Numbered from the stretch's first letter, positions 1 to 64,000 are shown. The stretch is 64,000 nt of DNA from Haplodiscus bocki (GCA_965655095.1 OZ296650.1:3162001-3226000); one strand, 5' to 3'. The notes: generated from the letters alone by a model not told the origin. Translations and numbers: made by a program.

Positions 1-2679
1 TGATTTTTTCAAAAAATGAAAATGTACAGTTAGGTGTTCTGTACTAGACAAATTTATGAAAAAGAAGTTCTGCGCCATGACATTTCATCCACTATGTAAC
101 AATAATGTTCATGCGTTGTCCAAAACATATATAGAATGTTCGATGCTTCCGGAAAATAAAAACATGAGAAAAAGTTACTGGTCATAATCATCATTGAATT
201 GAGACAGTTGTGTTCATAAAATAAACGTCAACCATAAATTATGACAAGATGAAGGCCAATTTGATGGCGGATCAGTACTGATGTCGATTAAATATGTGCC
301 TTCCATTTATGAAGTCGTGAAAGCAGTACTTCGATTCTCTACATTTTGAGATTTTGTCAACATGAAATGTGGTTAGTGGAAGCAACTTTAACAATATGTG
401 GAGGTAACGTGTAGAGTTAAAACGATGCTTCTCTACTGTTGATGTCGGTTTTGAGTGTTTCCGATTTTGAAGATTTTACTGCTCTACAGACCGTTCAAAA
501 ATTGTTTGCGTTTCACAAATTCTGATATCTGAGTTTTTCGGAAGAATATATCTGGTTGGTTTTGAAGCCTACTTATCGGAGTTTTGAACTTCTTTCAAAA
601 TAAGTTTTGATTTTTCTGTGAAAAAATGCTTCTCGTTGTCAAAATAAAATATCCGCCGTTGAGCGAAATATGGCAACGTGTTATTCCTCTGAACTCATGC
701 CGAAGTTAGTTTTTGGATAAAGTGTTTTGATATTTAATCATTATTTCTTTAGCGTCAACTCGACATTGCCAATTTCCCATCCCTCATTTGAACCCTCTGA
801 AATAGATACTTTTCTCATGTCATTCGATCGTTTGAACTTTTCATATTGTGAATCGTGACTCACTGAAGTCTCAACTGACTATGGTCAACATCGTATGGCT
901 TCTGTCGACAAATTGAGCCAATTGTTTTGGGTAATTTTTTTAAATGACGTTTTCGTAGACGAAGAATGCTGGATATTGTTTGTAACAATCGTTGCCTGAG
1001 TACTAGGTGTTCTTCCACAATTTCTGAATTGCAAAGGGGAACTCCGCTGTTATCATCGTACATGAATTGCTAATGTTACTCATGAAGCATGAGAAACGTA
1101 AGAAAAATTGAAAAGTGTACAACATAATCGTAACTTTAAATTTATACCGATGGATCCCAAAGATGATTGGCATTGAACGAACAGGGTCAACGGGCTCCTC
1201 AAATTTGAGCATGTTAATGGTTTTGCTACGGAGGAGAAATTGTTTTCATTAATTTTCTACCCATCTACCGCCTAAAAGCTACAGAGTGTTAACGTGCATG
1301 TTCGCAGAACTACATTACCTATAGGTTTCTGACAAACTTGTTATTGTGTGCGTTATTTCATCGTGTTTTTGCTGGCATTGAAAGTTCTTCATGTTTGTGT
1401 TTCCTGTGAGGTTCGTTTCATTTTCTATGTGAAAAAACCAATCAATCGTTTTTACCATTGTTGGAACGAAATTCAAGATCGAATAACCATAATTCATATC
1501 ATATTTTCAATAGTTTTGACCGCAAAAAATTGCCTTCTCCGACAACATTGTTTGGATTCGGACGCGCTTTGTGCAGATATTACCGAAAAAGCTGCGGAAA
1601 ATACTTATTGATGAAAAGTACTGCCTCAACATTTATAGCAAACTGCGTGTTATCTTTGGCATGGAAGTACCACGCATCTGACTGTGGATCAACTTTGGGA
1701 CGCACTTATCAGAAAACGATTTCTCTTTGACGGAAATTTCAATAACTTTCGGTAAATACTGAATGTTTACATTCTTCAATTGTTCAAATGAAACTTTGAC
1801 AAGGTAAAATTGTTAACATATTTTTTTGCGGGGGAAAAAGACGGCCTCTTGCTGTTTCTTGTTTCAAACTTTCAAAAATCCCATCTGTTTTGTACAATAA
1901 TCAATTTGAATGTTTTATTTTTAGCATATACATAATCGCTGTTGACATTATTGACTGATATTTTATTGATCAACCGCTGCTCTGAGCAATTGTTTTCTCA
2001 ACTAAATCACCCGATTTTTTCAGATTTCATAATTTCCTTATAATGCAATGATTTTGGAAGCCAAGATTTTCCCAAGAGAAAAACAAGATGGTGAGAATCT
2101 TTCAAACATAGTTCTCTAATTTGTTAGACTTTCCGGTTTTCTACATGATGATGTTTTTTTGTGGTATCATTTTTCACGTCATGTCAGACTTCAGTCATAA
2201 ACAAAAGGGCATAATTTCAGTTTGCCTGAATTAGTAGTAAGATCTCAGAAAAACTTTATTTTTTCTCCATTTCTTGCCTCCACATTTTTCATGATTACTC
2301 TTTTCGTGTTAACTTGCAGCCCTGCTAAAGTGCACACTTTTCCGAAACACCTTTGGAAATTCGTATGAGTTCGCTCAACACTCATGCGTTCTCAGTTGGT
2401 TTTTCCAACTGAACCTTGTTGGCTTCTAAGAACGATTGTGATGTGCATTGTAGTCTCTTTCACTGAGGATTGGGGAAAAAACTTTCGAATTCAACGAACT
2501 CGCCGTGTACACTACTAATTGACGGGAGTCCGTAACATCGGGATGCGTTCCACTTGTATGGGTGAACGGAAAATAAATTCTTATATACGATTTTCAAACA
2601 ACACAAGATTCGCAATTAACACTCATTACATCGCCGCCTCTACGAGTAAATACCTGTTTGTTTTCTTTCTCTGATGAAT

Positions 2680-2717
2680 GCCTTGGTTTTGCTTCGTTAA
2701 CTGCGCAAAACCAAGGC
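2680..2717. promoter_or_regulatory. Perfect 13-bp inverted repeat GCCTTGGTTTTGC-N12-GCAAAACCAAGGC upstream of the polyprotein gene (function unknown)
   Basis: Arms read directly; identical arms at the equivalent position in all four large elements. Confidence 0.7.
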
Positions 2718-2897
2718 CCACATTGCATATATTTTTCTGGATACTGCTTTTTTCGAATTCATTAGATGCTACCGTTAATTGAACAGTTTGAAAGTTTTGT
2801 ACGTTGGTCCCATAATGGCGCCCACTCTTTACAATGTATTCACTATTGAAGATGATTTATTGATAAACTTTTGCGCGAAGTTTCTTGTGAAAGAGTA

Positions 2898-5800
2898 ATG
2901 CCATCTGGCAAGAATGATTTGAAAAGACGTCGCTGTGCAAAATGTGGACGCTTCAGTGAACGTAATCACTCCTGTCCAAATAACACCGACAATGTTTCTT
3001 CAACTAGCGAACCATTAGGAATTTTGTACAGTATACCTGACAGTAATTTGCTGGTCTCCTCTGTTGATGCCCTGCACTTAGAATCAACGTTGGAAGCGAT
3101 GGGACTATCCTGTTCCCCAACAAGCGGCATAATTGGGAATAAAACTAACATTCGCCTCAGTTCTGTTCAACCCTCGCACAGTCTTTCTATAACGGGTGAT
3201 GGTAATTGTCTTTTCACTGCCCTGGGCGTTGCCCTCGGTTTTTCTCATGAAAGTGGTCATGATTTGAGGAAACTTATTGTGAGTAACATGGACTCGGTGA
3301 CTTTTCCGGAAAACAGTTTGCAAACCTCAATCTATTCCGCTGAGTTCCCCAACCAGAACAAACTTCTCACGAGCCCAACTGTCAACCACTACCTGCAGAC
3401 ATCGCGAATGGCAGAAAATGGAGTTTTTGGCACTTGTGCGGAAATTTATACCTTTTGTCAAATTTTTAAATTGGACGTTTATGTATACCACAATATTTTG
3501 AAAAGTTGGTTCGTTTACAAATGCGACTGCTCAAATGACAGACAAGGAGTTTTCATTCAACAAACGCCAACTGGAGATCACTTTGAGGTAATTAGTGGCT
3601 TGACTGAAACATGCCACACTTCATTACTCCTATCAGAAGATTTAGCTGGTTCGAGTAGTCAATGTGGAAATTCAGCAATGAATACTGACTGCCACGTAAT
3701 CCAGACAGCACTTGAAGCACTTGATGAAACTGAGCCCTTGCAGAAGCGCAGACGGACTTCAGATTATCCAGTCGGCACACATTTGATCGACATTGGAGAA
3801 ACTAATACAGCTGTGACATCTTTTTGTTTGGCGGAAGCTCTTTGTGGTGCAGAAAATACTACAACGCAAAAAGGAGGCCAACCTCCAACTGCTGTGGAAC
3901 ATCGACAACATCAATTTCACAGATTGCCTGGAGGTGAGTTGACTGATGAGATTTTCCTGAATATAACTGAAAACTTTGTACCACCACCGAAATCGACTGA
4001 AGAATCAACCGTTGAAATCGAGTCAAAATTGGTTGTGACAGATACTGTCGATGCTGCCAACATTTGTTGCAAGTGCATGCGTCAAGCCACGGTATATTTT
4101 CCGTTCGACATTAAGGCCTACGGCAAAGTTGGATTGGTTAATAGAAAGTTCGGCAAAAAGCTGAAAAACGAAAATGTACATCTGTGTTGTTTCTGTTATA
4201 ACTATTGTACTGCACCAAAGGTTAACTGGCAAATGGCTTGGCCAGCTGTTTTTTTCACGCTCCTTTCTGATACTTCCAGACCCGAAGCTTCTTTAGTCGC
4301 TATTTGCTCGCTGTTACCCCTGGAAATAAGGCAACATTGGCTAGGGGTAATTACCCTTTTCCCTATCTGCATCCAGCGTGTTTTAAATCGGCCGCGTATT
4401 CTTGGCACTTGTACTGTTGATGGAACACAGAGATTGAAACGTTTCGAGCAACTAATGAGAACAATGAGACAAAAAGAAATGGCTGAAGCTTTGGACTTGG
4501 AACCGTATCCAAACATACGTTGCCCTTTTGGTTGTTGGACGTTTATCGAAGATCCTGGGTACATACCAGCGCAGCATTTTATAAACTTGATCGACAGAAC
4601 TTTCACATCATTCCAAGCGTCTGCATTCAAAAAACTCAGAGGCGCCAGACTCGACTTTTTGCGCCCTTTGATGTGTTTAAAAACGTTTCTAGGGGCTGCC
4701 ACAGTGCGGTTACATGAGAAAGAATGTTTGGTTGTGCAAACTTGTTCTGCGCATGACAGGGGATGTGCGTTACAGTTCTTGCATCCTCCCAGGCATCCGG
4801 AGCTGGGACGAATTCCAACTTTGTTTGAGGAACGATTAGCCATTGCATCACCTTCATTGTCGTTTGTGAGTAGCTTAAAGGCTAATTATGCTAGCCACAC
4901 CTATCAACTGTTTCGGAGCGTTGGGTCTTATAGTGGTATGAGTACTGTTTCATTGAGACGTAAACGGCGTTGGAACATCACTAGCAACCGTTTGTTCCAA
5001 GCTGAAGGAACCGCCATGTTTTTCAGGTCAGATATTCCCATTTTAATTGGACAATGGGTTGTTGAAGGTAAATTGATTGAAGATGTCGCCACTGATCTCT
5101 CTCAATATCAGCCGGAAAATGAAAAAATGGCGGAGCATGTCGGCGTAGATCTTGACACCTGCATTCGATTGACGAAGGTGATGGACAAAAACGAACAAGA
5201 ACTTTTGAGTAATGTGAAATTTCTTCAGTGCTACGCTTTGGCTCAACCAAACAATGAACATGGTTGCTCACCTCCTCCTCTGATCAATGATACTGGCGAT
5301 ACACTCTGGTTTCTTCAAGCAGCATGCTGCATATCTCCATTTTTATGTTCATCCATGGTGTCTGGCGTTAATCACGTTTTCGCAACAAATTTGTTTTCAC
5401 TGTTGCGTCATACATTTGCTGGGTTTGGAAAAGAAAGCAAGTTGCAGCGTATTTCACAAGCTCAAGCTGACATTGACACTATATTGAATAACGCGGCGAC
5501 TAGCAATGACAAGCCAAACATGATTTCAAACTTTTTTCAGGCGGGTTGCGTGGTGTTGCACGCATTATGTGCTGATTTATGCCATCTTCAGTTGAGCCAA
5601 AGAAAAGAATTAACTGAGAAAATTCTGCGCGACGTTACCGTGGATACGAAACACGTGATCGCTACAACAACTGATGTAAATAATCTGAGGAACAAGGTCA
5701 ACCCACCTCTCAACGTCTTCCTATTTGATGTCCAAGTTGAGCTTGTGGGATGTGGTTGTGGTTCTCGGGGTACAGATGCTGTAATTTTGCTTCGGCACGG

Positions 5801-8800
5801 TGGTCGCTTCTGCAATTTTTGGCGTATAGTGAAAGCTAACAAGTTTGCTGAACCTTTGTTGGACTCACCTGAGACCTTACTAGAAAAAATTCTACGAGGC
5901 TACTGGACTTTTTTAATCTACCGAGGAACTAACTCTAAAAAGGTGTCGACTGTAAAGTGGCACTATCTTAGTAATTTAACCGGTCAAGGATTTTTCATTT
6001 GTGACAAACATGATGTTCCGTTAACGAGGGACTTCCGACGTAGCAACTACTTCTGTGGATGTGGAAGGTCATCATTCCTCAGATGTGCCTACTCAAAATG
6101 CAACAGTTGTGTGTGTAAGAAACACTTCGACGAGGGAATGAAACATCCAAACTTACGAGTTTTAGTTCGACCTACAGCAGAACAAAAATTAACGCCTGAA
6201 AAACCGACCGCTGAAGCTGCAATCATTGCTACACAGTGTGAACTGAATTCCAACTTAGGTAGTTTATGTGAGCAGGACAAAAGCGTTGTTGAACCAGATC
6301 TATCCATCAACTGTTCAAGTCAAAACTCAAGTTCATCATCAATAGCTTCTTTTTTGTGCAACAACATGAACGCAAACTCGATCAGCGAAAGTGAATTGGC
6401 GATGAATAAATTGAACTTGTGTTCCGGTGAAAGGGCCATTGTTGCTGTACAAGAGGCTTTCAGAGAAGAAGACTACAATATTCCTCTCCACATACTGTTG
6501 AATTCTCGATGCAACTTACTGTACAGGAAAAAAAGTCATCCCATTTCCCTGACCGTTAAGGAGAAACGTTTCATGGAAAACATTACAGCTTCTTCAACAT
6601 CATCAACGCCTTTGCTTCAACCGGAAGGGCTGCTTTTTCCTTCTATTTTCTGGTCCCAAAGTTACGATGGCAGCATTGATGGAGCAATTCCAATATCCCT
6701 GTTCCAATCCGAAAGATACAACAAACAAGTGGGGTTTGCAGGGTTAGAGAACATGCTACGAACTCGCATCACTGATGGGTCGCTTTTAACCTCCAGTCAC
6801 ACATCATATCTTCAGTTCGTTTTTGACTGTCTTTTAAACTTACAACTGAGTAAAACTGATATTCGAATTGTGTTGAACAGAGGCTGGCAAGAATTGGGCA
6901 GTACGCCTACTAATTACCAGTACTTTTCCGATGAAACGTTCAAGTTTGATTGTGCAGAATCCCGGAAGAATGTGTGCGAAGCAGCAGCACTCATTAGAGA
7001 TAAAAACCCCACTTATTTTGTAACATACACATGTGGGCAATCTACTCACCCTGGCTTGCGGAAAATTTTTCAGGCTATTGACAAACTTTACCCGCCCGAT
7101 ATGACATCCAAAGAACTGAGATTATCTGTAATACAAAGTGAATTAATGCCTATGCTTAGATGTTGGCATCGCGCCTCACAGTATGTAATGCAATGGTTGA
7201 AATGTTCGGCCGAGCAACCTTTGGGACCAATCTCTCACTTATGGATGAGATACGAGTGGCCAGACGAAACTTCGGCCTTTCCACACATCCATGCACTAGT
7301 GTGTACCGGAGAAAACAAGTTTGGTCCGGAAGTGCAATCCCGAGTCTGCTGTTCAAAAGAAACATTCATGGGCGCCTTAAGGAAATGCTGTCCAGCGTTA
7401 TCGGATAGCGAACGGTTCCGGTTGGGAGAAATTTTCCAAAAATACCAACGGCACGATTGTGGCAAGGGAAAAAATAGATGTAAAAAGAAAACTGATTGGT
7501 TGGGAAAGCCAGTGTGTAGGGTACCTAAATATCCTGCATCAGTTGGGTTCTCTTTTAAAGAAATACAACCTAATTACTCGAAAGAAACTTGGGACTTGTT
7601 GAGAAACATGAAATTGTCCTATATTGACCCTAACTCTTCAACAGACAAAGTTGAAGAAGAACTTAAAGCTGGAAAACATCACTACCCTGCTGCTTACAAT
7701 GAACACATGTCACCAACAAATGCTGCGTTGTTTGCTTTCACGGAAAGCAGTACGAACGTCCAAATTTGTGACGACGAAATGTGTTCACGATACGTTGCAA
7801 AGTATGCTGCCGGTGTGGAAGGTCGGGCGTTCACAAAGATATTAGCCTCTGCTGGTGAGAATGAAGTGAAAGTCCAAACAGAACCTATTGTGAACGAAAA
7901 AATCGCCGGAGTCCAAACCAGCGTTACCAAAAAACGTCAGGATGATGATAAACGCAAATCTGTAACGGGCAGAATTGTTAGCATAACTGAATGCTTGTGG
8001 TAGGCTTTGCAGTTGCCGTACGTTTGCACAAACATAGATTTCATTCATGTACCAACAGTTCCCAAAGAGTTCAGATCAGGAATAGTGATTGAAAAAAAAA
8101 TTGCGAGCACCATGAACTTCAGTGCTGTTTTTGCCGAAGCTGTTCGAATTCGGAAAAACTTTCTGAAGCTTCCAAAACATCGACAATTAACAAAAAATCA
8201 AGAATTGTTGTTGGCAGATGTGGAAGCGAGTTCAATTACGCCTGACAAAGTGACCATTTTTGGCCTGAGACCACCGGAGCTTCTGTTTGTCAGCAGTTTG
8301 AAAAGTTATTTCAGTTGGTTCGTTAGATTCAAATACAACATTTTGAAAGGGAAAAGTAGTCATGAGATTTTGTTGAGCCGTGCATCGTGTAATGATTTTT
8401 GGGTTGATTGCCTTGGATACGTAATCAAGATACGCCCACCCGCTATCTTTGATTTTCTTGATTTTTGTGCAACAAGAAGTGGTAACCCGAGGGACGAATT
8501 TTTGAAAGAGGAGTGCCGCAAACACATTGTCCCAAATTGCAAGGAGCCAACAGTTGCCCCAGACTAGTGGCGTACAATCTTTGTTTCTCAGATCAAAAAG
8601 CCATAGTGGTTTTCACAAATACTCTGCCCAGTAGTCCAACAAAGTTCTTGTTGCACTTTGTGCTAACATTTGGTTCGTTTGACACCGAACTGGACATTCT
8701 CTCTGTTTCATCTCTCGGGGAATCTTTTGTAGCTGCCAAACTGGTGGAGCGTAACAACATTACTGTATCAGTCGTCCGTCTACTAGCTCGCCGGTACCTT

Positions 8801-10996
8801 TTGCAACAGCTCCGCTTTGTGCCAAGATCCTCTAAACTCATAGACAAGTTTTTGTTGATGGCAAACAGCGTTCTAGGAGAGGCACTGTTAGAAAACAATT
8901 TGTATTTTGCATCCGGGGTACCAGCTGTCTTAGATCGCACTATTTCTGCCGACTCCGAAGAAAATGTTGCTGTAGATTTGACAATGAACAAGAGTAGATT
9001 GGTGGAGTTCTTACACACATGTCAAATGGGACTTCCAAGCGAAGAAAGTATGATAGATGCTTCTGTAACTGCACCCGTTGCTTGGAAACCCGACTTTGGT
9101 AGACATCCTAGCCAGACAGTGAAGTCGTACTGTGAACAGACTAAGATTTTGAAACATTTAGTTGAAATCGTGGACCTGTACAGAGGAGGAACACAAAATT
9201 TCGTCAGACATCAAATCATTGCAGGGGCACCAGGAACGGGAAAAACGTTCATCATGTTGAGAGCTCTGAGTTATGCAATATGTCAAGGACTCAATTGCAT
9301 GGTAACTTCGCTGGCGGCCGAAAGGTCGGCTGCTTTAGCTGGCAAGCATCTGAACGCTCTCATTCCTTTCCCGGTGGAAAAAAAAGGAACTGTTAATTCT
9401 TTGTCTCGAGTAGCTTTGTCCAGCTTGCAGAAGTCACCGGACAAAAGTCGGTTACTCCAGAATTTGGATGTATTGTTCGTTGAAGAGATTTCGATGATCT
9501 CTAGTGAACTTTGGGCGGCCACGGACCACGTTTTCCAAATCATCTGCTTGAACTACGTGCCATTTGCTGGGAAACTAATCATTGCCACAGGAGATTTTTT
9601 TCAACTTCCTCTACCAAAAGGAAGTTGTCTGATCAGTTCTTCATTCCCTTTAACAACTTTTCATTTTAGTTTCCTCCAACACTTTGTGCGTATGCAAAAT
9701 GAAACAGGTCAGAAAGTTTTGTCACTCATGTCAACTTTTCCCAGAACAACTGCCATGGGAAAGCAAATTTGGAATTTGATCGAGCGAAATTGCAATTTCG
9801 TAGAATGTTGGGATGACGTACCAAATGATGCAATTCGAATTTTTGCTACTCGCAAAGCAGAAAGATAAGCGACGTTGAAAAAAATTAATCAAGTGAAAGA
9901 CAGCGGTTCCCAGTTCCATGAAAGTTCATCGACAGATGAAATGTGCGTGTCAAGTACGGACAACTGGATAGAAGCTTCTGGAGCGGTAACAAAGTTTCTA
10001 AACAAGAAATGTTTGGAGCCACAATCGTTGTTTCTGTTCCCCGGAGCAATTCTCCGACTCACCGTGAACAAGCCAAATGTGATGGCTTTCCAAGGACAAC
10101 TCTGTGTTTTGGTCTCCCTGGACTCATTGGCTGACAACGGAACAGTAACTGTTGCCTTGGCACCTGCTGGTTGCCGATCTATTCCACCAGTCTCTGTAAT
10201 ACGAAGTACCTGGAGATGTATTGTCCTTACAAAAGAAATTGGAGTGAACATTCGTCTAAACCACAGGACTATTTGTCGCAGAATCCAATTCCCCCTCAAA
10301 TTGTACGTGGCGTCAACTATTCATAAAACTATGGGCGAAACACTCCCAACAGTTGCTACGCAGATTGTTGGAGCTCAAGAGTTTTCGCTTTGGTTGCCAG
10401 AGCAACTATACGTAATAATGAGTCGTGTTCGATCACTGGTGGACATCACTTTCGTGGGATCGAAGCAGTCCAACGAAGGAGCCATCCTGAGTTTGCTGAG
10501 TAAAAAGTCACAGTGGTCGGAGCTGAGTACCGAAATCCTCCAGAAGTGTTCTTCCCGTGACCCAACGATCTTCCATGGTGCTACAAACCCTTTTCCATCA
10601 ACCATCAGTATACCGCAGGAGAATGTTGGCTACTGTTACCTTATTCAGAGCGTCCCCCAAAACAACTTGTTATATATTGGTTCAACAATGTGCCTCAATC
10701 GACGAATTCGTGAACATAATGTTGGCTTGGGAGCATCATTCACACAGGATCCCTCTCGAAGACCTTGGGTTTTGTGTGCTTACGTGACTGGTTTTCTTGC
10801 AAGCAGCTCAATGGAGAGAATAGGGTTTTTTGAAAAACGGTGGCTTGAGGCAGTTACTAAAGTGCTTAACTTGAGGAAGAAGTACATCTCCCTCCCGAAT
10901 GCATTGTCAACAGCAGAAAACTTAATCATAAATTGGCCTCATAAAGAAGATGTCTTGAAATTGGTAATTTGCTGTAATCAGCCCATATTACTTTAG
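2898..10996 (+). pseudogene. Disrupted OTU-Rep(HUH)-Pif1 helicase-GIY-YIG polyprotein, copy A1
   Basis: ORF pieces 2871-8003, 8007-8567, 8513-9868 and 9875-10996 are collinear with the intact B1 protein. Motifs: GDGNCLF...HF (OTU), PTYFVTYTC / RYEWPDETSAFPHIH / YVAKY (Rep), GAPGTGKT / VEEISM / GDFFQLP / TIHKTMG / QLYVIMSRV (helicase), GYCY..LYIGST..RRIREHN (GIY-YIG). Lesions: TGG>TAG at 8001, a 1-nt deletion near 8530 and TAA at 9866. Confidence 0.9.
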
Positions 10997-11410
10997 TACC
11001 TTAGAGAAACACTAACAAACTACTTATCAAATGCTTTGCCGACTGTGAAATGTGACGAACTGAATGCTTTCTCACAAAAAAACCTGAAGTTCATTATTTA
11101 TTCAACACATGAAATGAATTTTTAAACGTCCAACGTATATCTTCAATGTCCCCGGTGGTTTCCAGAGGTGCACGTATGAAGTTTTTCGTATGTGTGTTTT
11201 TGCTTTTTGTTGCGTTCAAAGAACGCTGAATTTGTTAATTCTAAATGTTGTTTCTCTTGCTAATTACAACAATTCAATTGTTCGATTTGTGATGTCTTTG
11301 AGAGTAGTCAGCAGAATATTTAGCCAACGTACTCTTTTCCATTGAGTTTAACGTTTAAGTAAGTTTAATAAAAAACTTTCTCGAAATTATTCATTTGCGG
11401 AAAAGAATTT

Positions 11411-11457
11411 GCTGCACTTTTCCATGCTGCACTTTTCCATGCTGCACTTTGCTGCAC
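11411..11457 (+). repeat. Short tandem expansion of GCTGCACTTTTCCAT
   Basis: About three copies in A1; a single copy at the equivalent site in A2 (~45394). Confidence 0.8.
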
Positions 11458-19300: not shown

Positions 19301-19647
19301 TGGTCTCTTTTCGTCTTCTATACGACATTTTCTTCGAAACCTAGACTGATCTTTTCAACTTTACATCTGTTAAAACCAGCTACTTACTTCATAGATGAAA
19401 CAAAGGTACTGATTTTTTTGGGCCCTTGAATATAAAATTTTTTTACCTGCAAAAACTGAATTGAATTGATGCCTGGTTTACACCAGTGAAAAAGACTACG
19501 AACCTCTGAAAACTTTGTTGGGTCTTAATTTACCCAACTTCAGTTACTTGGTGCCATTTTTTGCAAAAAGTTTTCAAGTTCCTAAGTGTTTTGTGAAACT
19601 GAAAAATTACGTTGTGTTCGATTGAAGTCAATAAAACTGCTGAGGAA

Positions 19648-51170: not shown

Positions 51171-54100
51171 AAGGCGTGAGGTTTAAATCGGTGTTTCTTT
51201 CGTGTTCAGATTTTTTTCTGCGACAAACGAGTGTAGTCCTTTCATTGTGCGTCAGTCAACTTGAAGTAGTGTGTTGTCGGTTTTTGTGACGAAGACAAAA
51301 AATTCCCTATTAGGTGCCAAATATTGAAGCTGTAATCGTTAATCCTGATTCCAAGTTGTTGTTTTAACTTCTCTGCCACCGGCATGAGGGGTAATTCTAT
51401 TTTTCTGTAGAAGCAAGAAGCACTGGCTTTGTCGATGCCGTTCGGAAAAAGTGCAGTTAGCTGTTGAATACGAAGGGCGCCGAAGTCTGCAGAGCAATGA
51501 ACAGTTGTTATCTTGGAACAAAATATGTTTTTTTTTGTTAATATTTAAATTTAAAAGTTGCTTTTGAACCTTTTCTCCAGCTAGCAGAATTCTTCGTTAT
51601 TGTCCAATTCATTTCTATAATTTATTCGTAATTAAAATAAGAAATGTGAATAAAGGTTTGTTTTAAACTCGAAGTTTTTATCTAAACTTTTGCTGTTTCT
51701 TTTGGAGCTGTTTCCAGATAAATCTTTTTTTGTCTCTCATTGCTGTCTTTGTTTCTTTAAACAAAGAAAGAAGTTGATTGGTGTTCAATTACGCACTCCA
51801 AAGGTATGTTTGGCTTCTGCCTTGGTGGAAGAAACAAAGGTTTTGTTGCTTCCAATGTCCTCTGCAGGGATAATCATGACAACGGAACTTTGCAACGGGA
51901 TACTAATATTTAGTGAACAAATATCAGAAAGTTGGAAGGGGTGGCCTCCAGGAACCTTACGCGTTGTTTGAACCTCAAAAATCACGAGCAAGGTTCTCGA
52001 GTTTCTCATACCTATGAGACTCATTTTCAAGGGTTCCAATGACTGTTATAACTTACATTGGTTTTTTGAAAAATGTGTCTAATTAATATCAACCACCCCT
52101 TCCTCCGCTTTCGAAATTTAATTTCTCAATACTTTTGTTAATGAAATTTTACTGTTCAGACAAAAGAGGCAACGGTATGATGATTTTTTTCTGATCGGCG
52201 CCAAGTGCAATTTTTTTCCGGCCTTCGGTGGTTTTTTTAAAGGAAACGTTGCATTGCGCATCTATTACGTAATTTATATTTTTTTGTTTCGTTTTTTATT
52301 GGATTTCACGATTGATCACAATCATTTCTTCATTTAAGGCTTCCTGCGGTGTAGCTGTATCTTTTTGTTCGAATCAACCGTTTCTTGACGGCAATGGTCC
52401 GGTTTCCGTTTGTAGTCGTATGAAGTTTTACTGACCAATATTGTTGTTAAATCAATACTTGATTAGACAATCAGTGATAGCTACTGCACGCTTCATCGTG
52501 GATTGATGTTTTCCCGTTGATTCGCTTTCTTCGTTTGTTTACAAGGTTGTCCGAGCTACTTTTCTCGAAATAATTTCGTTTTCTATTCATGGCTTTCGTT
52601 TGAAATGACTGTCCTGCTTTTACGGTCAACATATTTGAAAAACGCACCCAACCAATTTTTTTCCGAAAAGCTGTTTTCGTATAAATAATTGCTTTTTTTC
52701 AAGACTGTACTGACAATTAAATATTTCTAATGTTTTCGCGGAATTATTAAGTTTCGATACTCCGCGTTGAGCAGTTAACGGAGTATTTCTTCAGGTATAT
52801 AATTCCATCAATTGTTCAACTTTTTACCGAATTTCAAATTCGTCCTTCCGTTGCTTCATTTTTTTGCTGATCTTAAATTATTGAATTTCCTGAAGCAATT
52901 TAGATTTTTTAATGTTGATATTATTATTTTATTCACAATGTTTTTCTTCCAATTCCCATCCTGATACTCTGATCCCCCGGAGTCATTTGCATTTTTGCTG
53001 GACGGATGGCAATTCACTTCCTCAACCTTATGCTAGATCGACTGTTGACATTTGACATATGCTCCTCCGAAGACATATATAAGCCCTCGTTGAAGTTTGT
53101 AAAGTGATTGATTAAAAATTAAAACGTATTCCTATTTTAACTTTATAAATATCTGTTTAATATCCGTAACGTTTTCTCACGTGTAATTGCTGGCTGTGGA
53201 AGGTTTCTTTTGGGGAAGTTTTGTTTCATTAATTGTGAATTTTCTCTCTTAAGCTAGCTTCGACGTTTAAAACTCAATGCTTTCCAATCTTGAGGTCCAC
53301 GTTGACGCTCCTTTTTTCCTGCAGTAAAGATTTAAGGAATTGACTCTACTGCCAGAAATGCAAAAATTCAAATAAGCTTTACTTGTATTAAATCAGCCGA
53401 AAGATGATCTTTAATTGTCAATTGACGGAATCAAGACACAATAAGAAACAACGGCGTGATAGCCATATTGATCAAAGACTTTAACCGATTCAGTTTTTCA
53501 AGTTCAAGATGGAAACTATATCACAACAATTAACTGTGTCTGAATGATGCTAGGCAGTTGGAATTGCACAAAACTATGGCACTTTTGAACTTCCTTGATC
53601 CAATTTTTTTATGTTTTCATCAAGGTTTTTCCTATTTTGAGTCTTGAAACTTTCCCTGTATTCTATCAGTGTGCCTGTTCAACTATCAACGTTGACGAAA
53701 CGACATGAAAAAGACAGCGAATGGAGTTTGTAGAATTTGTTCCTAAGCTCTTGATTTCAAGAAGGTTTCCAACGTTGACGTGTTATAAAAAATTTACTGA
53801 ATTCAATCCTTTGACGCCTAGAAACTTTCAGTAGTGGTTTACGTTGTAGTTGACTGAAATGAGCCCTGAATATTTGATTCTGAAATCTTGTGAGAGAGAA
53901 AAGAAGAATTCGACGAAGAATGATGGAAATACAGAGCTTCCAATTGTTTCTCCCAACTGAAACAAAATTATTGTAGCAACAATTCTCTCTACCCCCTCAT
54001 TTTTGTGAAATTGTTATTGAATGCGTTTTTTAGACTACAAAACTCATGAGCTTCTTCGCATGTTAAATCTGGTCTCTGTTCGTCATGTATAAGTCATTTT

Positions 54101-54419
54101 TTTCGAAATATGGACAGACCTTTTCAATTTCACATCTGTGAAAAAGAGGTACATGTTTTATAGGTGAAACAAAGTTACTGATTTCTTTCAGGCCCTTGAA
54201 TACGAGAACTTTTTACCTGCAAAAACTAAATTAAATTGCTGCCTGGTTTACACCAGTCGAAAGCACTAAGAACCTCTCAAAAACTTTGTGTGGCCTCACT
54301 TTTGCCCAATTTCAGTTACTTGCTGGAAATTTTTGCCAGAATTTTTCAATTTTCCTAGTTGTTTGTGAAAATGAAAAATTACGACGTGTCTGATTGAAGT
54401 CAATAAAACTGCTGAAGAA

Positions 54420-54457
54420 GCCTTGGTTTTGCTCCATTCCGTTCGCAAAACCAAGGC
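54420..54457. promoter_or_regulatory. 13-bp inverted repeat, 12-nt spacer (B2 copy)
   Basis: GCCTTGGTTTTGC tccattccgttc GCAAAACCAAGGC. Confidence 0.7.
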
Positions 54458-54722
54458 GCCTGGTTTATGAATGGTTGGAAACGAATTATGATTTTTTAAC
54501 GTACTTGCTTATCTTTTCCGTTGCATCGACCCTGAGATTTAACTAGACAGGCAACAATTTGTAATCGAACCTCAAAAGATTTAGCTCATACGACAAGTTG
54601 ATATATTTACCTGCTATACGAATTTCCTTGCTTTTTATTCAGCGTGTGGTTGTATTGTAACTTGTTCTTTCATATAGTTATGATCCCACTGAAATATGAA
54701 ATAATGTCTGTTGTGTTTGACA

Positions 54723-57700
54723 ATGTCAAAACAAAACAGCAAAGGAAACTTAAAGCGTCGACGTTGTACTTCCTGTGGACAGTTTGTTGGAGAACATCAT
54801 GTGTGTGCAAAATCAATTGAGGTTGAACTTCAGGCCAATCAGTCTTTAGGAATTTTATACAAAATTCCCGATGCTTCAGTTTCTGTGTCACCTGCCGCGA
54901 GAACGGAGATACACAGCTCGCTGAACACTTTGGGGTTGATTGACTTTTTAAAGCCTATAAAAACAGCTATTGGAAATGATACAGTTATCTGCTCCACGCA
55001 GCCAGTCCGGGTAACAGCAGTGCTTGGGGACGGTAATTGCCTTTTTTCCTCTCTGGCAGTTGCTCTCGGGCTGTCACATGAATGTGGCCCAATCATACGA
55101 AACATTATTGTCAGCCACATGAATTTAATCAGTTTCCCCCCTAATAGCCTGCAAACATCTGTTTACTCCGACGACTTTCCCAACCAACATCATGTTTTGA
55201 ATTGTACTTCAGTCGATGAGTACCTCCGCGAATCTAGAATGGCAGAAAATGGTGTTTTTGGAAGCTGTGTTGAAATATATTCATTTTGCCAAATCTTCAA
55301 AGTCGATGTTTTTTTGTACCATGTTCCGTTCCAATCGTGGATGATTTATGAATGTTCGTCCAACGTAAATCGAGAAGGAATTTTCATTCAACAAAACAGG
55401 AATGCAAATCACTTCGACGTGATAACAGAGCTAGTTTCAGTTGGTCCTGAAAGCTCCAGCGTAGCGCAAGTTGGATCAATTGATCGCCCTTTTTCTCAAT
55501 TAAGCGAAAATAATCACTGGACTCAAGCATTGCAGAGCTGCGAAGCAACTGAAACTGAACCAGCTTCGAAAAAAGGAAAAATCCATTCTGATTACACCTG
55601 GGAAGAGCACCCAAAGACTCTCGCAACAAGTCCCTTGAACATTTCAGTATCTACCAATATGAAGAAACTTTCGGCCTTAGAAACATTATCAACAAATTCA
55701 ACGGACCCCCTAAACAATGATTGTTCACAAATGCTGGACGCCCCAAGTTCTGCCTTTTCCCCAACAGATAGTGTTTCAACAAATATGCACCCGAACGGCG
55801 AGTGCCCCAATTCGAGCGGATCTGACTGTTGCGCAAAATGCATGCGCCAGTCAACAGTTCTTTACCCTTTAAAATTGACGAGGAAGAATAAAGTTGATCT
55901 TAAAAACCGTGTGTTTGGAAACAAGCTAACGGGACCCATTGTTGCTTTATGTAAGCTCTGTCTTCTCTATTGCACAACCGAAAATTATGATTGGTACAAT
56001 GCTTGGCCGTCTGTGTTTTTCAGCCTATTGAGTGATCAAGACAGGCCAGTTAGAACCCAAATGGATATTTTGTCTTTGTTACCTTGGGAATTGAGACAGC
56101 AAAAGATGACATCCATGCACTACTTTCCCCTGTGCGTTCAAAGATGTCTAAGTCGGAAACGGATTGCTGGGAAATGTTCCGTTGATGGGACGCTTCGTTT
56201 GCGTCGTTTCCAGAAACTCATGAAAACCTTAAAGCAGACTAACATTGCTGTTGCCCTGGACAATGAACCTTATCCCAACGTCCGCTGCCCATATGGGTGC
56301 TGGTGTTTCATTGAAGAATCAGGTTGGATACCCGCAAATCACTTCATCAACTTTTTTGAAAGAGACTTTACCTCGTTCCAGTCCTCCAGCCTCCTGCATC
56401 TAAGAGGAATTAAGTCCGAATTTTTAACACCATTTGTGTCCCTGCGCCAGTTCCTAGTAGCAACTACAGTGCGAGTTGATGAAAAAGTGGGACTCGTAGT
56501 TCAGACTTGCTCCATGCACTCAAGAGGCTCCAGTGTGCAGTACTTTCATCCGCCATCACATCCTTCGCTGGGGCGATCTACAGTGAATTATGAAGAACGT
56601 CTTAGTGCCATCGCACCCACATTGTCGTTCGTCTCAAGCATCAAAGCCAACTTCGCAAGTCATACATACCAATTGCTAAAAAGTGTTGGGTCTTACAGTG
56701 GAATGAGCACAGTCCGATTGAAGCGGCAAACGCGCTGGGATTTCACTAGTGACATTTTGTACCATGCTGAAGGCGTCGCCTGTCACTTCAGAGAAGACAT
56801 TAAAACAATGGTTGGTGAGTGGGTAAGACAGGGTAAAATCCTTGATGACGTAGCTTCGGGAATGCTGGATTATATACCGAACAAAAAGAAAGTCAACAGT
56901 TGTTTGTCACAGGCCACTTCAATAGACTTACAAACATGCCTCGACCTCACGAAAATAGTGGAGAAGAATGAAAAAGAATATCTGAACAATGTTGAGCTGT
57001 TGAGTTGTTACACTCTCGTTCATGGGAATGATGATTATGGCTGCTCTCCACCTCCTCTAGAAAATAGAGTTGGCATAGTTTCGTGGATTGTGCAGGCTGC
57101 AGCTTGTGTTTCCCCGATGCTTTGCCGTTCCTTAGTGAACTCATCAAATTACAGTGTGACACTTAGGCCTTTGTTCACTTTACTCAGGAAGGTGTTGCTT
57201 GACACCACAAGAATGAATACAGCAAAAGTTTTATGGCTCGTTGAAAAATCCGAACAAGCAGTATCAGCTGTAATTGAACAAAATAACACTGATGACAAAA
57301 CAGAAGGAACAGCTGACTGTTGTTGTTTTGTTGGAGCAAGGTTTCTATCAAAAATTTGTAACACCATGCAACACTTTCCCTTAGACAAACGGAAAAATAT
57401 CGGTTCAGACACCACAGAGCAAGTTTCGTACAACATGACTCATGCCATTTATACGACAGGTTCCCCAAAAAATTTGCGGAACAAGGTTGATCCACCGTTA
57501 ACCCTGATTACTTCCGACAATGAATTTGAATTGATCGCAGTTGGAACGAAGGATGGAAGCAGCAAGGGAGATCCGAGGTGGTTAGTTAGACATGAAGGGA
57601 AGTTTCAAGGGTTCTGGCTCATTGAGAAAAGTACAAAATTTGCCAAAAAAACAGAAGGCTCCCCGACTGTTGCGCTGGAAACTTTCATTCGGGGTTATTG

Positions 57701-60700
57701 GACAATTGCGATTTATCAAATATCGAGAAATGTTGAATTGCTTGATTTGAAATGGAAATTTTTGAGCACTTTGACCGGTCAGGGTATTTTTATTTGTGCA
57801 CATCACACAATTCCTTTAACCAGAGACTTCAGAAAGAGTGGTTTCCAATGTAGATGTCGTCGTGCATCGTTTTTGCGCTGCCCGCATTTGCAATGCTACT
57901 CTTGCGTTTGCAAGCGTCACTTCAATGAAGGTCTACAGCAGCAACACAGACGTATTTTAATTGATTCAGTACCGTTGGAGAAGTTGATTAAAATGAATTC
58001 CCCTTCTGTGGTATCGACTTCATCTTCGTCACGGGAATTTATTGAGCCCAACAGCATGTCTGCATATGAACCGATTCAACCAGATGCGGCTACACAAACG
58101 TTTGAGATTGCATCAAGTAACAGTTCGTCCGTCAGTTTTATTCTTCATCCGGAAAGAAATGACGAAGAATTCGAAGATGACAACTTGAGAATAATGGCTA
58201 CATTAAAAACCAACTCAGATGAAAAACTGATTTCCGTGGATCTTGAACGAAAAGAAGATGCCTTCAAACTACCGCTCCATATTCTTTTAAACTCACAATG
58301 CAATCTTCTTTATCGACGTAACGGGAATCCAATCAGCCTTTCTCTGAAAGATAAACGTTTCCTGGAAAATATTTCAGCTGTTTCGACGTCTGCATTACCG
58401 CTCATTCAACCCGAAGCTCTTCTTTTTCCATCGATTTTTTGGTGTCAAGCTAGCAGCGGCAGTTTTCCAGGAGCAATACCAACGGCTTTATACAATTCAT
58501 CCAAGTACAACAAACAGCTGGGTTTCGCTGGTTTGGATGACATGCTTCGAACTCGAATCAAAGACGGCTCTCTTTTGACATCTTGCAATCCTACTTATTT
58601 GCAGTATGTGTTTGATTGCCTCTTGAACATGCAGCTTCATAAAAGTGACATTAGGATAATACTAAATCGAGGATGGCAAGAAGTTAATTCGGTTCCTCAT
58701 AATTGCTCTTTTCTTTCGACTCAAACTTTCAAGTTTGATTGTGCGGAAAGTCGAAAAAATGTCTGCGAACTTGCGGCTTTAATTAGAGACAAAAATCCAA
58801 CCTACTTTGTGACATACACTTGTAGTCAATCGACCCATCCGGGGATTCGGAAAATCTTTGAAGCACTGCATGAAATGTATCCCGCAGAAACCACTCCAAA
58901 GGAAGTACTTTCAGCAGCAATTCAAGCTGAACTCATGCCCATGCTCAGGTCTTGGCACCGCGCCTCTCAATATGTAATGGAATGGGTGAAAAATTCACCA
59001 GAAAAACCACTTGGTCCTGTGTCTCATATTTGGATGAGGTACGAATGGCAAGAAGAGACAGCTGGCTTTCCACACTTGCATGCTATATTGTGCACACCAG
59101 AAGATAAATTTAGTGATGATGTACGATCTCGAGTTTGCTGTTCAAAACAAACGTTTTTGGGTGGCTTAGAAGTCAGTTTCCCCGAATTGAACGCAGTCGA
59201 ACGTTTCCAACTGGGTGAACTTTACCAAAAGTATCAAACCCATAACTGTTCGAAAGGCCGTAAACGTTGCCATAAGAAGACAGATAGGCTAGACAAACCA
59301 ATTTGTCGTGTACCAAAATATCCTCCTTCAAATTGTTTTTCCTTCAAGGAAATTCCGGTGAACTTTTCTTGCGAAACAATGGAACTTCTGCGAGGAATTG
59401 GTTTAGCAGACATAGATGAAAACTCGCTGTTCCCAAAAGTGAAAGATCCCTTAACAGCCGGAAAACATCATTATCCCACTGTCTCTAACGAACATTATTC
59501 ACCAACGAACCCTGCTCTTTTTGCTTTGACACAATCCAGCACCAATGTTCAAATATGTGATGACTACATGGCCCCCCGCTACGTTGCAAAATATGCAGCC
59601 GGCGTTGAATCTCGAGCAGTTGCCAAAATTGTCGCTGGTGAAACAGAAAATAGTGTCAAAGTCTTGACAGAACCAATCGAACATGAAAAAATAGCTGGGG
59701 TTCAGGCTTCGCTAAAGAAATTGAGAGGCAACGAAAAACAAAAATCTGTAAGTGGTCGTGTTGTCAGCATAACTGAGTGTCTCTGGTGGTCCTTACAGCT
59801 TCCGTATGTTTGTACAAATGTCGATTTCGTTCACGTGCCAACTGTTCCCAAGGAATATCGATCTGGAATTGTCACTGAAAAACGCTCTAGCAGTAATATT
59901 AAGTTGGGCGCCACGTTTATGGAAGGAATTCGTGTTCGGAAACACGTTTTACAACTCCCAAAGCACAGGCAGTTCACTAGAACACAAAGTTTCCTTCTCG
60001 CAGATGTTGAAAACAGCTGTATTTCGCCAGACAAAGTCACAGTTTTTGGACTCCGCCCACCTGAACTTTTGTTTGTCTCGAAGTTAAAAAATTACTACAG
60101 TTGGTTTGTTCGTTTTAAACCGCAAACAAAAAAATCCATCAGCAATCATGAAGGGTTCTTGAATAAAAGCCTCCGCAGAAGTTGTTGAGTTGATGCATTG
60201 GGGTATTTGGTTAAACTACGCCCTTGTTCTGTGGACGCTTTTGTAAATTTCTGTCGTGCAAACGGTACCGATGGACGGGATAGGATTCTGAAACGCGAAA
60301 TGAGAATACACATTGTTCCGTTGCTTGTGACAGGAAAAGCGTCACAATTTGTTGCTCAGTGGAAGCATTTGTCAGAAGAAGATGCCGTAGTTGTTTTCAG
60401 TAACATTTTGCCGAATAACCCAACTAAATTTCTACTACATGTGCTCTTGACTAATGGAGAATTCGACACAGAGTTGGACATTCTGAACGTGCAATCTTTC
60501 AAAGAAGCTTTCACTACAGCTAAAATTATTTCAAGTTGTAACATAAACGCCAAGACCGTGCAAAATTTAACACGAAACTATTTGCTGGAACAACTGCGTT
60601 TTGTACCTGGGTCCTCGAAACTAATTGACAAATACCTTTTAATGGCTCACAGTGTCCTTTCGGAGGCTCTGATAGTAAACAGCCTTTATTTCGCCGCTGC

Positions 60701-62780
60701 TCTACCACCTGTGCTTGACAGAAGTGTCATTGAAGAATACGAAGAAACACTAGCAGTGCAAATCAGTATGGAAAAATGCAAAATGGTAGCTTTTCTTCAC
60801 ACTTGTCAGAAACAATTACCTACTGAGCAGGCCATGCTAGATGCAACCATCACCTACCCTTTACCTTGGAAACCAGTCGTTCAGAAAAGCCCGGATCAAG
60901 GTCAAAACTCTTTTGTGGAACAGAAACGTGTATTAGACCAACTGTTGAATTCCATCGACATTTTTAAAGAAGGACGTTGCACTTTCATCAGGCATCAAAT
61001 TGTCTTTGGACCTCCAGGAAGTGGGAAAACTTTCGTTGTGCTAAAATCGCTTGCGTATGCTTTATGCCAGGGTCTCAACTGTGTAGTAACATCTTTGGCT
61101 GCTGAAAGATCTGCAGCTTTGGCTGGCAGACATCTGAATGCCCTGATCCCATTTCCAGTGGAAAAACACGCTTCTGCAGAATCGCTCTCGAGAAAAGCCC
61201 TGTCCAACTTACAACGGTCTCCTTTTAAGAGCCGCTTTCTGCAAAATCTACACGTTCTTTTCGTCGAAGAATTGTCAATGATTTCTAGCGAACTTTGGGC
61301 TGCAACGGATTATGTGCTTTAGGTTATCACAGCAAATTATGTTCCATTCGGTGGTAAACTTGTTATTGCAACCGGAGATTTCTTCCAACTTCCTCCACCG
61401 TCAGGATCTTGTTTAATGAGTTCTTCTTTTCCTCTCACAACTTTCACTTTTCTCAAACTGGAAAATTTCGTTCGAATGCAAAACAAAAATGGCCAAGAAC
61501 TGTTGTCCTTAATGTCAGCGACTCCAAAAACTGACGGCAATGCGAGGCGTATCTGGGAAATTATCCATAAAGTTTGCAACTTTGTCCATTCATGGAAAGA
61601 CGTGCCGAATGATAGAATTCGAATTTTTGCCACTCGACAAGCAGAACGTAAAGCAACTGAAAACAAAATAATTGATGTTAAAAACAGCGGGACGCAATTT
61701 TATCAAAATGCGGCAAATGATAAAATGTGCGTTTCAAGTACTGACAACTGGACCGAAGCGTCGCCAACTACATCAAAGTTTCTCAACAAAAAGTGTCTTG
61801 AACCCCAGTCGTTGTTTCTGTACCCCGGTGCCATCTTACGACTAACAGTGAACATGCCATCCCTATCCGCGTATCAGGGTCAACTCTGTGTTCTACTTTC
61901 TTTAGATACAATTGAGAATGGCACTGTGACAATTGCTGTAGCACCAGCTGGTTGCCGAAGTATTCCACCGCTTTCTGTGATCAAAAACAGATGGCGTTGT
62001 GTCGTTATCGGCAGAGAAACTGGTGTTGCCTACCGATTAAACCACAAAACTATTTGCAGACGAATCCAATTTCCACTAAATTTATTTGTAGCATCAACCA
62101 TTCATAAGACAATGGGTGAAACGCTTCCGATGGTCGCAACCCAAATAGTTGGATCAAAAGATTTCGCTCTATGGCTTCCCGAGCAACTGTATGTTGTAAT
62201 GAGTCGAGTAAGAAGTTTAAATCAGGTGACGTTTGTTGGATGGAAGGAAGCTAACAAACGAGCAGTCTTGGATTTAGTCTGCAAAAAATCGCAATGGGCT
62301 GAACTGACGAATGAAATTTTGACTAAAAGTTCCGCTTGTGACCCTACAATTCATCATGCAAGAGCATCTCCTTTTCCCCCCTCAGTGAAAGAGCTACCCG
62401 TTCAGAATCTGGGGTTCTGTTACTTGCTCCAAAGTGAACCACAGAAGCACCTTCTGTACATTGGCTCCACTATGTCGTTAGTGCGTCGTTTGAGAGAGCA
62501 CAATGCAGGACTGGGTTCCGCCTTCACCAAAGTACAAAATCGCTTGCCCTGGATAGTGTGTGCTTATGTTACTGGTTTCAATTGGAATAATGCTTCAGAA
62601 AGAATCCGAGCATTCGAGAAGGAGTGGTTGAATGCGGCATCACACTTCGTCAACGCAAAAAAGAAAAATGTGTCACTTTCCACGGCTATCAATTTGGGGG
62701 AAATTGTCGCAAAAATTTGGCTACACGAAGAAGATAATTTGAAGCTAATAGTGTGCTGCAGGTCATCACTTGTATCTTGA
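54723..62780 (+). pseudogene. Polyprotein copy B2 with two in-frame nonsense mutations
   Basis: TGG>TGA at 60186-60188 and CAG>TAG at 61320-61322; otherwise collinear with B1. Confidence 0.9.
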
Positions 62781-64000
62781 GAAATAGTACTTTAGATAAT
62801 GTTGCTCACAAACTTGTGGATTGGTTTCGGATAATTGTTTTACTTGCACACAAACTACCTTGCCTTGACACCCATACGCATCGACTGCATAGTGATGCAA
62901 TGGTGAGCTTCGCTTTATGTTATGCTGCAACCGCAGCGGCTGCAGATTCATGTACCAAGTAGAACGTGCAGCAACATCAACCTTTTCGCTGGAAAAGATA
63001 ATGCTACGACTGCATAGTGTTGCATTATCTATTTTGCAGTTTAGATGATTTGTTGCTAGTTACTTGTCTGATTGTACGTACAGCCTGCTGCAGGACGTTA
63101 AAATGATGAATTTATCGCCCTACGGTTAACCTTCACATGATGTGTTTCTGCTTTCCTTTGTGTTTTTGTTACTGCTTCTCAAAGAATTCCTCTCGAAAAG
63201 TGATGGATGTTTTTAGAAATCTTCGTCACTTATAGTTAGTACGTTAATTGTCGTAGTAAGGATCATAAACTGATGCTTCATACTTTTGGATAACATCGAA
63301 ATGGATATGTTTTTCTGTGTATCTATAGTTTCGGTTTTCCGGTTTCCCATATGATAAGTTTCTGAATATATTATTGAAGTTATTCGTTTTTCTTTAGCAT
63401 GAAATTCTGGTCATTGCGCTTTAGATGGATTTATTAGACAGAGCCCGCAAATTAATTCAATTACGTTCCCGAAGATTGAGGAGACCATGTTGCTCACTAA
63501 AACAATTGAAAAAGCTTCTGAAATGTTCATCATTGTGAATGGAAAACCTTTTCATAAGTTTTCTTGAACATGAATTTCAATAACCATTAAGTATCTTCGA
63601 TTTAATGACAGATAACTAATCTTTTGCGTACTTAGGCTATGTTTTTCAAGGTTTGGACCAATGGAAACTAAGACTTTAAGAACATTCAGTATCTCCAGTT
63701 CAAAAACATTGACAATCTGCAACCTCAACTACAAAACCAAATCAAGTTTTTTGTTTATTTATGAGTGTGCGGAAATTTGTATAACCTATTCATTGGTACA
63801 GAGACATCCGCCCACACACTGGCCATTTACACTGTTACTTTCAATTGGCCATTCGAAACCAAAATCAAAGTTTTGAACTGTTGAAGAGACGAAAGTGTTT
63901 TACAGTTGTACATGAAACCTCTGGTTTTTAGGGCATATCGATTGATTAGTTTTTCTGTAAGTTTTAAGTGCTTGTAAAGTTTGGCTATTGAAAGTGCGAC

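Follow-up and report, generated by a model that had tools for sequence, protein, structure and literature searches.

Helitron-like elements of unlike families stacked end to end at a shared core in Haplodiscus bocki, with probable insertion at their own ends

We analyzed a stretch of 64,000 nucleotides from Haplodiscus bocki (GCA_965655095.1 OZ296650.1:3162001-3226000), hereafter called the window, in which rolling-circle transposons of several families stand end to end. An initial annotation of this DNA had proposed that their transposase uses the end-to-end junction as its target. Our results show that the elements belong to a larger array of one orientation, that all joints carry the same core and exchange sequence at the same point within it, that this stacking is the rule in the related loci, and that units of very unlike age stand side by side. 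Self-targeting that builds such arrays is the best-supported explanation and, judged from these sequence comparisons, a probable one. In the usual view, Helitrons lie dispersed, use a two-base target and form arrays as a by-product of a missed stop; the lineage described here appears to aim at its own ends.

Anatomy of the array and position of the exchange point

Extension of the window in both directions with the loci L021, L008 and L027 gave an array of ~90.9 kb with 10 elements in the order H-H-H-A1-B1-A2-C-B2-D-C'. All 10 units share one orientation and there is no spacer DNA at the joints, as had been read from the window. Unrelated DNA bounds the array on both sides, and no target duplication is found between the flanks. 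The window is part of ctg88421 of ERZ26859043, an ENA HiFi contig of 453.5 kb, since its last 930 bases (63071-64000) are 100% identical to L008 1226-2155, the protein P0011 matches window 60231-61319 at 99.7%, and a 67-aa open reading frame (ORF) of the window (863-1063, minus strand) is recorded on that contig too. The relatives in the protein collection all come from ENA metagenome assemblies.

By self-BLAST, A1 (1-16384) and A2 (33987-50121) are 90-93.5% identical, and B1 (16385-33421) and B2 (51171-63070) 90.8%; A and B, rightly described as strongly diverged, are similar at only ~70% and only in the coding region. The first 8 kb of A2 is 93.1% identical to A1 and 97.5% to a copy on ctg86403 (over a shared 4.6 kb). 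C had been taken for an unrelated mini-element, which does not hold: over 670 bp its 3' part matches the B1 3' end at 89% and the A 3' ends at ~66%. The first 378 bp of C have no other copy in the window, and C-related copies were found in L007, L009 and L008. The element end placed at 63070 was not upheld either, since the core that ends B2 lies ~4 kb beyond the window.

The element termini are 5'-CAGYGGAGGC...TGACCACC-3', and every joint carries the core TGACCACC^CAGTGGAGGC, in which one or two bases vary at a few joints. The sequence TGACCACCCAGTGGAGGC occurs exactly four times in the window, always on the + strand, against ~2e-6 occurrences expected by chance in 64 kb. The break had originally been set between ACYAG and RDGGCG, ambiguous within the AG, and the four junction strings quoted for it at 16384/5, 33421/2, 50121/2 and 51170/1 are indeed present. 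The exchange was located by comparing 20 junctions, taken from the window and from six further ENA loci, with positions numbered from that break. Variable positions between -18 and -1 share 0.52-1.00 bit of mutual information with the class of the downstream unit, mostly near their full entropy, and only 0.1-0.2 bit with the class of the upstream unit. From -36 to -19 there is almost no variation apart from three rare variants, and positions at or left of -37 track the upstream class. The claim that the left side follows the preceding family is thus correct at or left of -37 and wrong for the last 28 nt. Likewise, ACCGGTGAAAATCACCAG stands before every C-type 5' end starting GTGGCGGTCACTGG regardless of the upstream unit, and GACGGCGAAATTTACCAG stands before D after an A-type or a B/C-type 3' end alike.

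The rare variants sort with the units on either side. The variant at position 4 of the left end (CAGCGG in H, CAGTGG elsewhere) goes with the downstream unit, and the one at position -3 of the right end (GACCCCC in D and C', GACCACC elsewhere) with the upstream unit; the exchange therefore falls within CC^CAG, with an uncertainty of 1-2 bases caused by the run of C. The cuts in the window lie at 16356/7, 33393/4, 50093/4 and 51142/3, that is 28 nt to the left of the breaks first proposed, and the unit boundary is accordingly moved from behind the conserved core to inside it. C-type left ends can form a strong hairpin, CAGTGG... to ...CACTGG (-19.5 kcal/mol, z = -3.3), and B/C right ends a GGGG-N6-CCCC hairpin directly before TGACCACC. 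Left and right ends showed no terminal inverted repeat: the best 12-mer inverted match was 9/12 (A2, B1, C), a score equalled in 114-159 of 200 shuffles. The features of the array are as follows.

5' start of the array, upstream of A1, + strand: H, H, H, non-autonomous units of ~1,055 bp each
1-16356, + strand: A1; the element begins 590 bp upstream of the window, with the 5' end at L021r 8551 on the same contig
2871-8003 (OTU, Rep), 8513-9868 (PIF1) and 9875-10996 (GIY-YIG), + strand: A1 ORFs, RepHel frame broken
14007-15032, + strand: A1 ORF2
16349-16366, + strand: joint core 1 (A1/B1), TGACCACC^CAGTGGAGGC, exchange point 16356/16357
16357-33393, + strand: B1, 17,037 bp, apparently autonomous
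16357-16390, + strand: B left-end module, consisting of CAGTGGAGGC, an 18-nt family-specific stretch and then RRGGCG
19935-28004, + strand: B1 RepHel ORF, intact, 2689 aa, with OTU, HUH-Y2 Rep, Pif1 helicase and C-terminal GIY-YIG
30780-31787, + strand: B1 ORF2
33386-33403, + strand: joint core 2 (B1/A2), exchange point 33393/33394
33394-50093, + strand: A2, 16,700 bp
36864-38114, 38661-40352, 40349-41761, 42352-43587 and 43669-44979, + strand: A2 ORFs, RepHel frame broken
50086-50103, + strand: joint core 3 (A2/C), exchange point 50093/50094
50094-51142, + strand: C, 1,049 bp, non-autonomous, with the 5' hairpin (CAGTGG...CACTGG) and a B-like 3' 670 bp
51135-51152, + strand: joint core 4 (C/B2), exchange point 51142/51143
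51143-64000 and ~4.0 kb beyond the window (L008 1226-6190), + strand: B2
54711-60188, 60198-61322 and 61416-62780, + strand: pieces of the B2 RepHel, frame broken
Downstream of B2, + strand: D, 18,030 bp, with an intact 2,683-aa RepHel
After D, + strand: C', the last array unit, 1,042 bp, non-autonomous

The 3' 5 kb of B2 (window 63071-64000 and L008 1226-6190) is unlike B1 except near the end and holds no ORF of at least 100 aa and no ORF2; an internal segment is swapped or replaced in one B subfamily. The array is set in repeat-rich DNA. Directly upstream of the first H (L021r 1-5382) lies a reverse-transcriptase/RNase H retroelement (P0044, from a cluster of 94), and ~1 kb past the array end begins a satellite-like tandem repeat (L027 10235-20267; L028) with units of ~1.44 kb and 0.76 kb. 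This repeat has a higher-order period of 2.19 kb with copies 87-99% identical, is present on ctg88421 and ctg88836, and carries no core motif. Tandem Repeats Finder reported no repeat on the 3' flank, the periods being longer than 500 bp. In the window, scans for Rfam families and tRNAs gave no matches.

Stacking in other loci and the ages of neighbouring units

Stacking was counted in the window, in 16 ENA loci (11 HiFi contigs of one sample), in one scaffold from another ENA sample and in two Joint Genome Institute (JGI) contigs located by scanning for the 18-mer. These loci were found by means of proteins that the elements encode or by the core motif, and one genome supplied almost all of them. 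After removal of overlaps, 33 distinct core sites remained, spread over 13 contigs from three datasets; 32 of them are joints between elements and one is the start of an array on L023r. Sorting the end types by hand gave at least 16 ordered pairs: A>B, A>C, A>D, A>A, B/C>A, B/C>B, B/C>C, B/C>C', B/C>D, B/C>F, B/C>G, a>a, X>C, I>A, H>H and H>A. With so many pairs, and with young copies standing beside old unlike neighbours, the arrays are not copies of a fixed A-B unit.

Nor do the 3' ends mostly run into unrelated DNA. Another 5' end follows directly in 32 of the 34, and the remaining two, which run into other DNA on contigs 98.9% alike, represent a single array end. No solo element was found among the 23 seen end to end. 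The 5' ends found by their own family motif are each preceded by the core and the 3' end of another element; the exceptions are the two array starts, where the H-type left ends lie outside that motif set. Scanning JGI metagenomes for the 18-mer gave nine loci, of which two were real and seven were chance matches in GC-rich bacteria, and the scan of viral and prokaryotic genome collections gave none. The termini of the more distant L003-L005 (45-61% aa identity) were not found by motif, hidden Markov model or k-mer search. In L005 (45% aa identity, another sample) a degraded, internally deleted copy (19109-21812, compared with 11651-14457) directly follows an intact one, and stacking may reach beyond the family studied.

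Could the joints have been created by assembly, with repeats or an episomal circular replicon wrongly concatenated? One observation fits this, as L001, a scaffold of 17.3 kb, starts and ends in cores in the way expected at graph breaks in repeats. The same joint types are found, however, in HiFi contigs of 72-900 kb, in a short-read scaffold from a different ENA sample and in the two JGI contigs. A second contig, possibly the other haplotype, is 98.9% identical across D, C' and the flank, and the array is anchored by the retroelement on one side and by unique DNA and the satellite on the other. We regard an artefact as extremely improbable.

The relative ages of neighbouring units were more informative. 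Five A1-type copies, each on its own contig, agree at 98.3-99.5% over 8 kb (window A1 is 98.3-99.0% identical to the copies on four other contigs), and upstream of them stand an I-type end, an A-type end or H units only 83-92% alike. Between L007 and L009, the B copies agree at 98.7% but the C units adjoining them upstream at 80.9%. On L009 the C units follow each other in the order young, old, old, young, young, with C1, C4 and C5 at 99.0-99.3% and C2 and C3 at 84-87%. The B on ctg86403 is 99.5% identical to B1 (over the first 11 kb of B1), and the A upstream of it is A2-like (98.3%), not A1-like (92.1%). In each of these comparisons the high identity begins at the core.

This mosaic bears on classical read-through, by which the tandem Helitron arrays of bat, silkworm and plants have been explained (PMC4067079, PMC5876387). 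Here it would mean that Rep skips 3' ends and that composites or concatemers are copied as inherited blocks, with no junction targeted. Neighbours should then be equally diverged, whereas divergences of 0.5-1.7% were seen next to 8-19% in four independent comparisons; old C2 and C3 stand between young C1 and the pair C4 and C5; and the model offers no source for the many new ordered pairs. The adjacent C4 and C5 (99.3% alike), the two 3,175-bp units of L002 with identical ends and a correlation of B subfamily with the upstream 3'-end type are in its favor. Some read-through probably did take place, in C4-C5 and in the L002 units, but it would not be the main source of the arrays, and as the only process it is very unlikely. 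Neighbours of such unlike age argue against read-through or block duplication alone and for Rep-mediated insertion of single units. The simplest account of the sequences would be that units were inserted one by one, each precisely into a resident joint or right behind a resident 3' end.

Old tandem arrays might instead have been shuffled or homogenized by the host, through unequal crossing-over, ectopic exchange or gene conversion at the conserved ends. Long arrays of repeats in one orientation are good substrates for this, the 3' ends of A, B and C are 66-90% identical over ~600 bp, and a satellite-like repeat adjoins the array. Yet every switch of family falls in the same 5-nt window and is not scattered over the 600 bp of homology. 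Between H and A the likeness is limited to ~10-20 nt per end, which is too short for homologous exchange, and three contigs nonetheless have precise H-to-A joints; gene conversion in 17-kb tracts with ends exactly at cores is also implausible. Host recombination is in our view an unlikely origin.

Proteins encoded by the elements

Autonomous elements of ~17-18 kb encode one protein of ~2,700 aa, with OTU, HUH-Y2 Rep, Pif1 helicase and GIY-YIG domains, and a conserved ORF2. Intact RepHel ORFs of 2,683-2,689 aa are present, and their HUH and YxxxY motifs are invariant: PHxH (~residue 1454) and YxxxY (1623-1627) are kept in B1 and eight relatives, down to 29% identity, and the OTU motif DGNxLF stands out in the same alignment. 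Pfam searches of the B1 protein gave PIF1 (PF05970) at 2.4e-9 and a C-terminal GIY-YIG (PF01541) at 4.2e-9, and the weak Helitron_like_N match was under the Pfam cut-off (25.9 vs 28.9 bits). The best PDB matches of the helicase are PIF1 helicases at 4.7e-12, with a weak match to Helraiser, and the nuclease domain is nearest SLX1 among solved structures. In the A copies the same domains, together with the N-terminal OTU protease, are scattered over several broken ORFs. No integrase domain was found by Pfam in the large ORFs, which contain only OTU, Rep, PIF1 and GIY-YIG.

Although the A1-subfamily copies (L020-L026) are all 98.3-99.5% alike, the RepHel frame is interrupted in every one of them, and not at the same places. 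Either these young copies were mobilized in trans, or the contigs carry indel errors. The A2-like copy on ctg86403 has an intact-looking call of 2,698 aa.

In A, B and relatives, ORF2 (335-341 aa) is placed ~1.6 kb short of the element's 3' end; it is also present at L003 7420-8433. Its protein is 97-98% conserved between B copies that differ by ~8% in DNA, which suggests purifying selection. ORF2 had no Pfam match; its homologues, ~240 in two main clusters, are all unnamed ENA proteins, a lookup with the ORF2 of L007 re-found only L007's own contig, and the AlphaFold model has a mean predicted local distance difference test score (pLDDT) of 31.7. Upstream of ORF2 in B, by ~950 bp, is the conserved motif CTCGACCGCATGGTG (window 29834; L007 1777 and 19901; L003 8618 and 19883), which reads as a Kozak-like ATG and is followed in L003 by a GTGAG splice donor. 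The genes of the elements may thus be spliced and the ORF coordinates incomplete. The 17-mer CTCGACCGCATGGTGAG, which flanks the L003 element (8618, 19883), was considered as the core of that family and rejected, as it is also present inside B and reads as a Kozak-like ATG.

Array borders, proposed insertion mechanism and known systems

The start of the window's array reads ...GCATC followed by CAGCGGAGGC (L021r 5382/3). An independent start, ...ACAACC followed by CAGCGGAGGC (L023r 7500/1), is found on ctg86403 and on a 99.95% identical contig, and these two are probably allelic. The array ends with ...ATGACCCCC followed by GAGGTAAT (L008 25262), and identically at L028 9284 on the 98.9% alike contig; the two contigs probably represent two haplotypes or a recent duplication. 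Both starts and the end break at the same point as the exchanges between elements. Since arrays also begin and end in non-element DNA, the targeting is not absolute.

Both known array starts (L021r 5383; L023r 7501) open with an H-type mini-element, with the left end CAGCGGAGGC-TAGGGTACC. H may be better than the other families at founding arrays in non-element DNA, although with two cases this could be chance.

The cut sites at the three borders, ATC^CAG, ACC^CAG and CCC^GAG, have only C^SAG in common, so that the minimal target may be short, with the resident ends possibly supplying binding sites for Rep. A narrower form of targeting would follow from this: Rep, bound to a resident 3' end or reading a short C^SAG beside it, would insert after any 3' end, and the full joint would not be recognized. 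The HUH transposases of IS608 and IS91 set a precedent, with short targets that resemble their own ends and cleavage sites (PMC5876387). On this account the last 3' end of an array should keep gaining units. The left half of the core is as invariant as the right, which suggests that both are read. We consider insertion guided by the 3' end alone unlikely. Self-targeting, as proposed in the initial annotation, is the best reading, and none of the three observations named there as refuting it was made. The further point of that proposal, that the end-to-end junction is the target, fits the data as well as targeting of the resident 3' end does.

For the insertion itself we propose that Rep would nick the top strand at CC^CAG, both in the donor and in a chromosomal core, and then exchange strands. 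The donor would be an excised unit, probably circular, with the core re-formed where its two ends meet; it would enter the identical core between two resident elements or, alternatively, insert directly after a resident 3' end. Each insertion would remake the core on both sides without spacer or target duplication, so that any family could follow any other as the array grows. Founding insertions into non-element DNA would be rare, and the 1-kb non-autonomous units C, C' and H would ride on the autonomous elements. That the SLX1-like GIY-YIG domain nicks the other strand or processes a branched intermediate is speculation. We infer the nick, the circle, the strand transfer and any role of GIY-YIG from the anatomy of the arrays, the exchange point, the generality of the stacking and the age mosaic.

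Several observations weigh against this proposal. No circle, no pair of empty and filled alleles and no de novo insertion was seen, and an empty-site copy of the array flanks was not found among the fetched loci. The sampling described above could miss solo copies that have mutated cores or lack those ORFs. Founding insertions are known from only the two array starts and the one array end. All five young A1-type copies have a broken RepHel, and the proposal then needs trans-mobilization or assembly indels. Finally, the 3' end in front of B2-like copies is always of the C/B type and that in front of B1-like copies always of the A type, which hints at inherited adjacency or a preference for an end type.

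A more far-reaching version would make the system an HUH-driven eukaryotic counterpart of integrons, in which site-specific recombination between the joined-end core of a circle and any chromosomal core, cut at CC^CAG, would insert, excise and reshuffle units in self-made landing-pad arrays away from host genes. We put this forward tentatively, as possible rather than probable. In this version the elements would represent a natural, sequence-addressed system for integration of single-strand DNA that could be tried as an insertion tool. Self-targeting as such would account for the persistence of 17-kb parasites with little damage to the host, would make the 18-nt core with its known cut window a clean natural substrate for strand transfer by a eukaryotic HUH transposase, and would mean that cassette stacking of the integron kind evolved independently in eukaryotes.

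Compared with known transposons, the elements have the features of Helitron-like elements in the broad sense: HUH and two tyrosines in Rep, a Pif1-family SF1 helicase C-terminal to Rep, ends of one orientation with a 3' hairpin, and no target-site duplication, as the flanks ...GCATC and GAGGTAAT share no repeat in the one array for which both are known. Canonical Helitrons (HLE1) have the ends 5'-TC...CTRR-3' and insert between A and T. The elements described here have neither, and the flanking bases are C before the left end and G or C after the right end. They do share with HLE1 elements such as Helraiser/Helibat the Rep-Hel transposase and a short hairpin close in front of the 3' end. For Helraiser, single-strand transfer is known, as are circles in which the two ends are joined precisely (PMC4778049, PMC5876387). 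Bat and maize have occasional cases of unlike Helitrons in direct contact (PMC4067079), and a single such pair joined precisely head to tail is described from maize (PMC2267711). Canonical arrays are exceptional and mostly homogeneous, whereas here stacking is the rule, heterogeneous and a mosaic of ages.

Helentron/Helitron2 elements (HLE2) come close in protein architecture, with a giant protein that has an N-terminal OTU, HUH-Y2 Rep, Pif1 and a C-terminal endonuclease. They also have non-autonomous partners that share their termini, hairpins near the ends and no target-site duplication. OTU upstream of Rep is frequent in HLE2 and present in HLE1 as well, and for GIY-YIG there is one report, from an HLE2 family of Sphagnum (PMC11417382). 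HLE2 elements differ in their apurinic/apyrimidinic (AP) endonuclease (Exo_endo_phos), their insertion between T and T (or T/Y), their asymmetric or subterminal inverted repeats and their dispersed distribution. In our elements the sole C-terminal nuclease match is the SLX1-like GIY-YIG, no such repeats were found at the ends, and the units are stacked at their own joint, with ACC^CAG at the 32 joints and ATC^, ACC^ and ^GAG at the borders. The telomere-capping Helitrons of Paramecium (PMC13085455) are similar in their strict specificity for site and orientation and their pile-up in one compartment, but they target telomeric repeats at chromosome ends, while here the target is the element junction and no telomeric repeats were seen. 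In the literature searched, which mostly did not extend to subscription journals so that earlier reports are possible, we found no description of mixed-family end-to-end stacking as a rule or of self-targeting eukaryotic transposons.

IS608 and IS91 share with these elements an HUH enzyme whose target resembles its own ends; they have no helicase and form no arrays. The cassette arrays of integrons are similar in the way they work, not by membership: they too consist of heterogeneous units in one orientation, with a conserved core that is split by the crossover. Integron cassettes are inserted as circular intermediates at a resident site, where in our case a circle would have to be assumed. 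Integrons are bacterial and rely on a tyrosine-recombinase integrase that acts on attI and attC sites and on promoterless cassettes, whereas the units described here are themselves transposons in a eukaryotic genome, and the likeness is one of architecture only.

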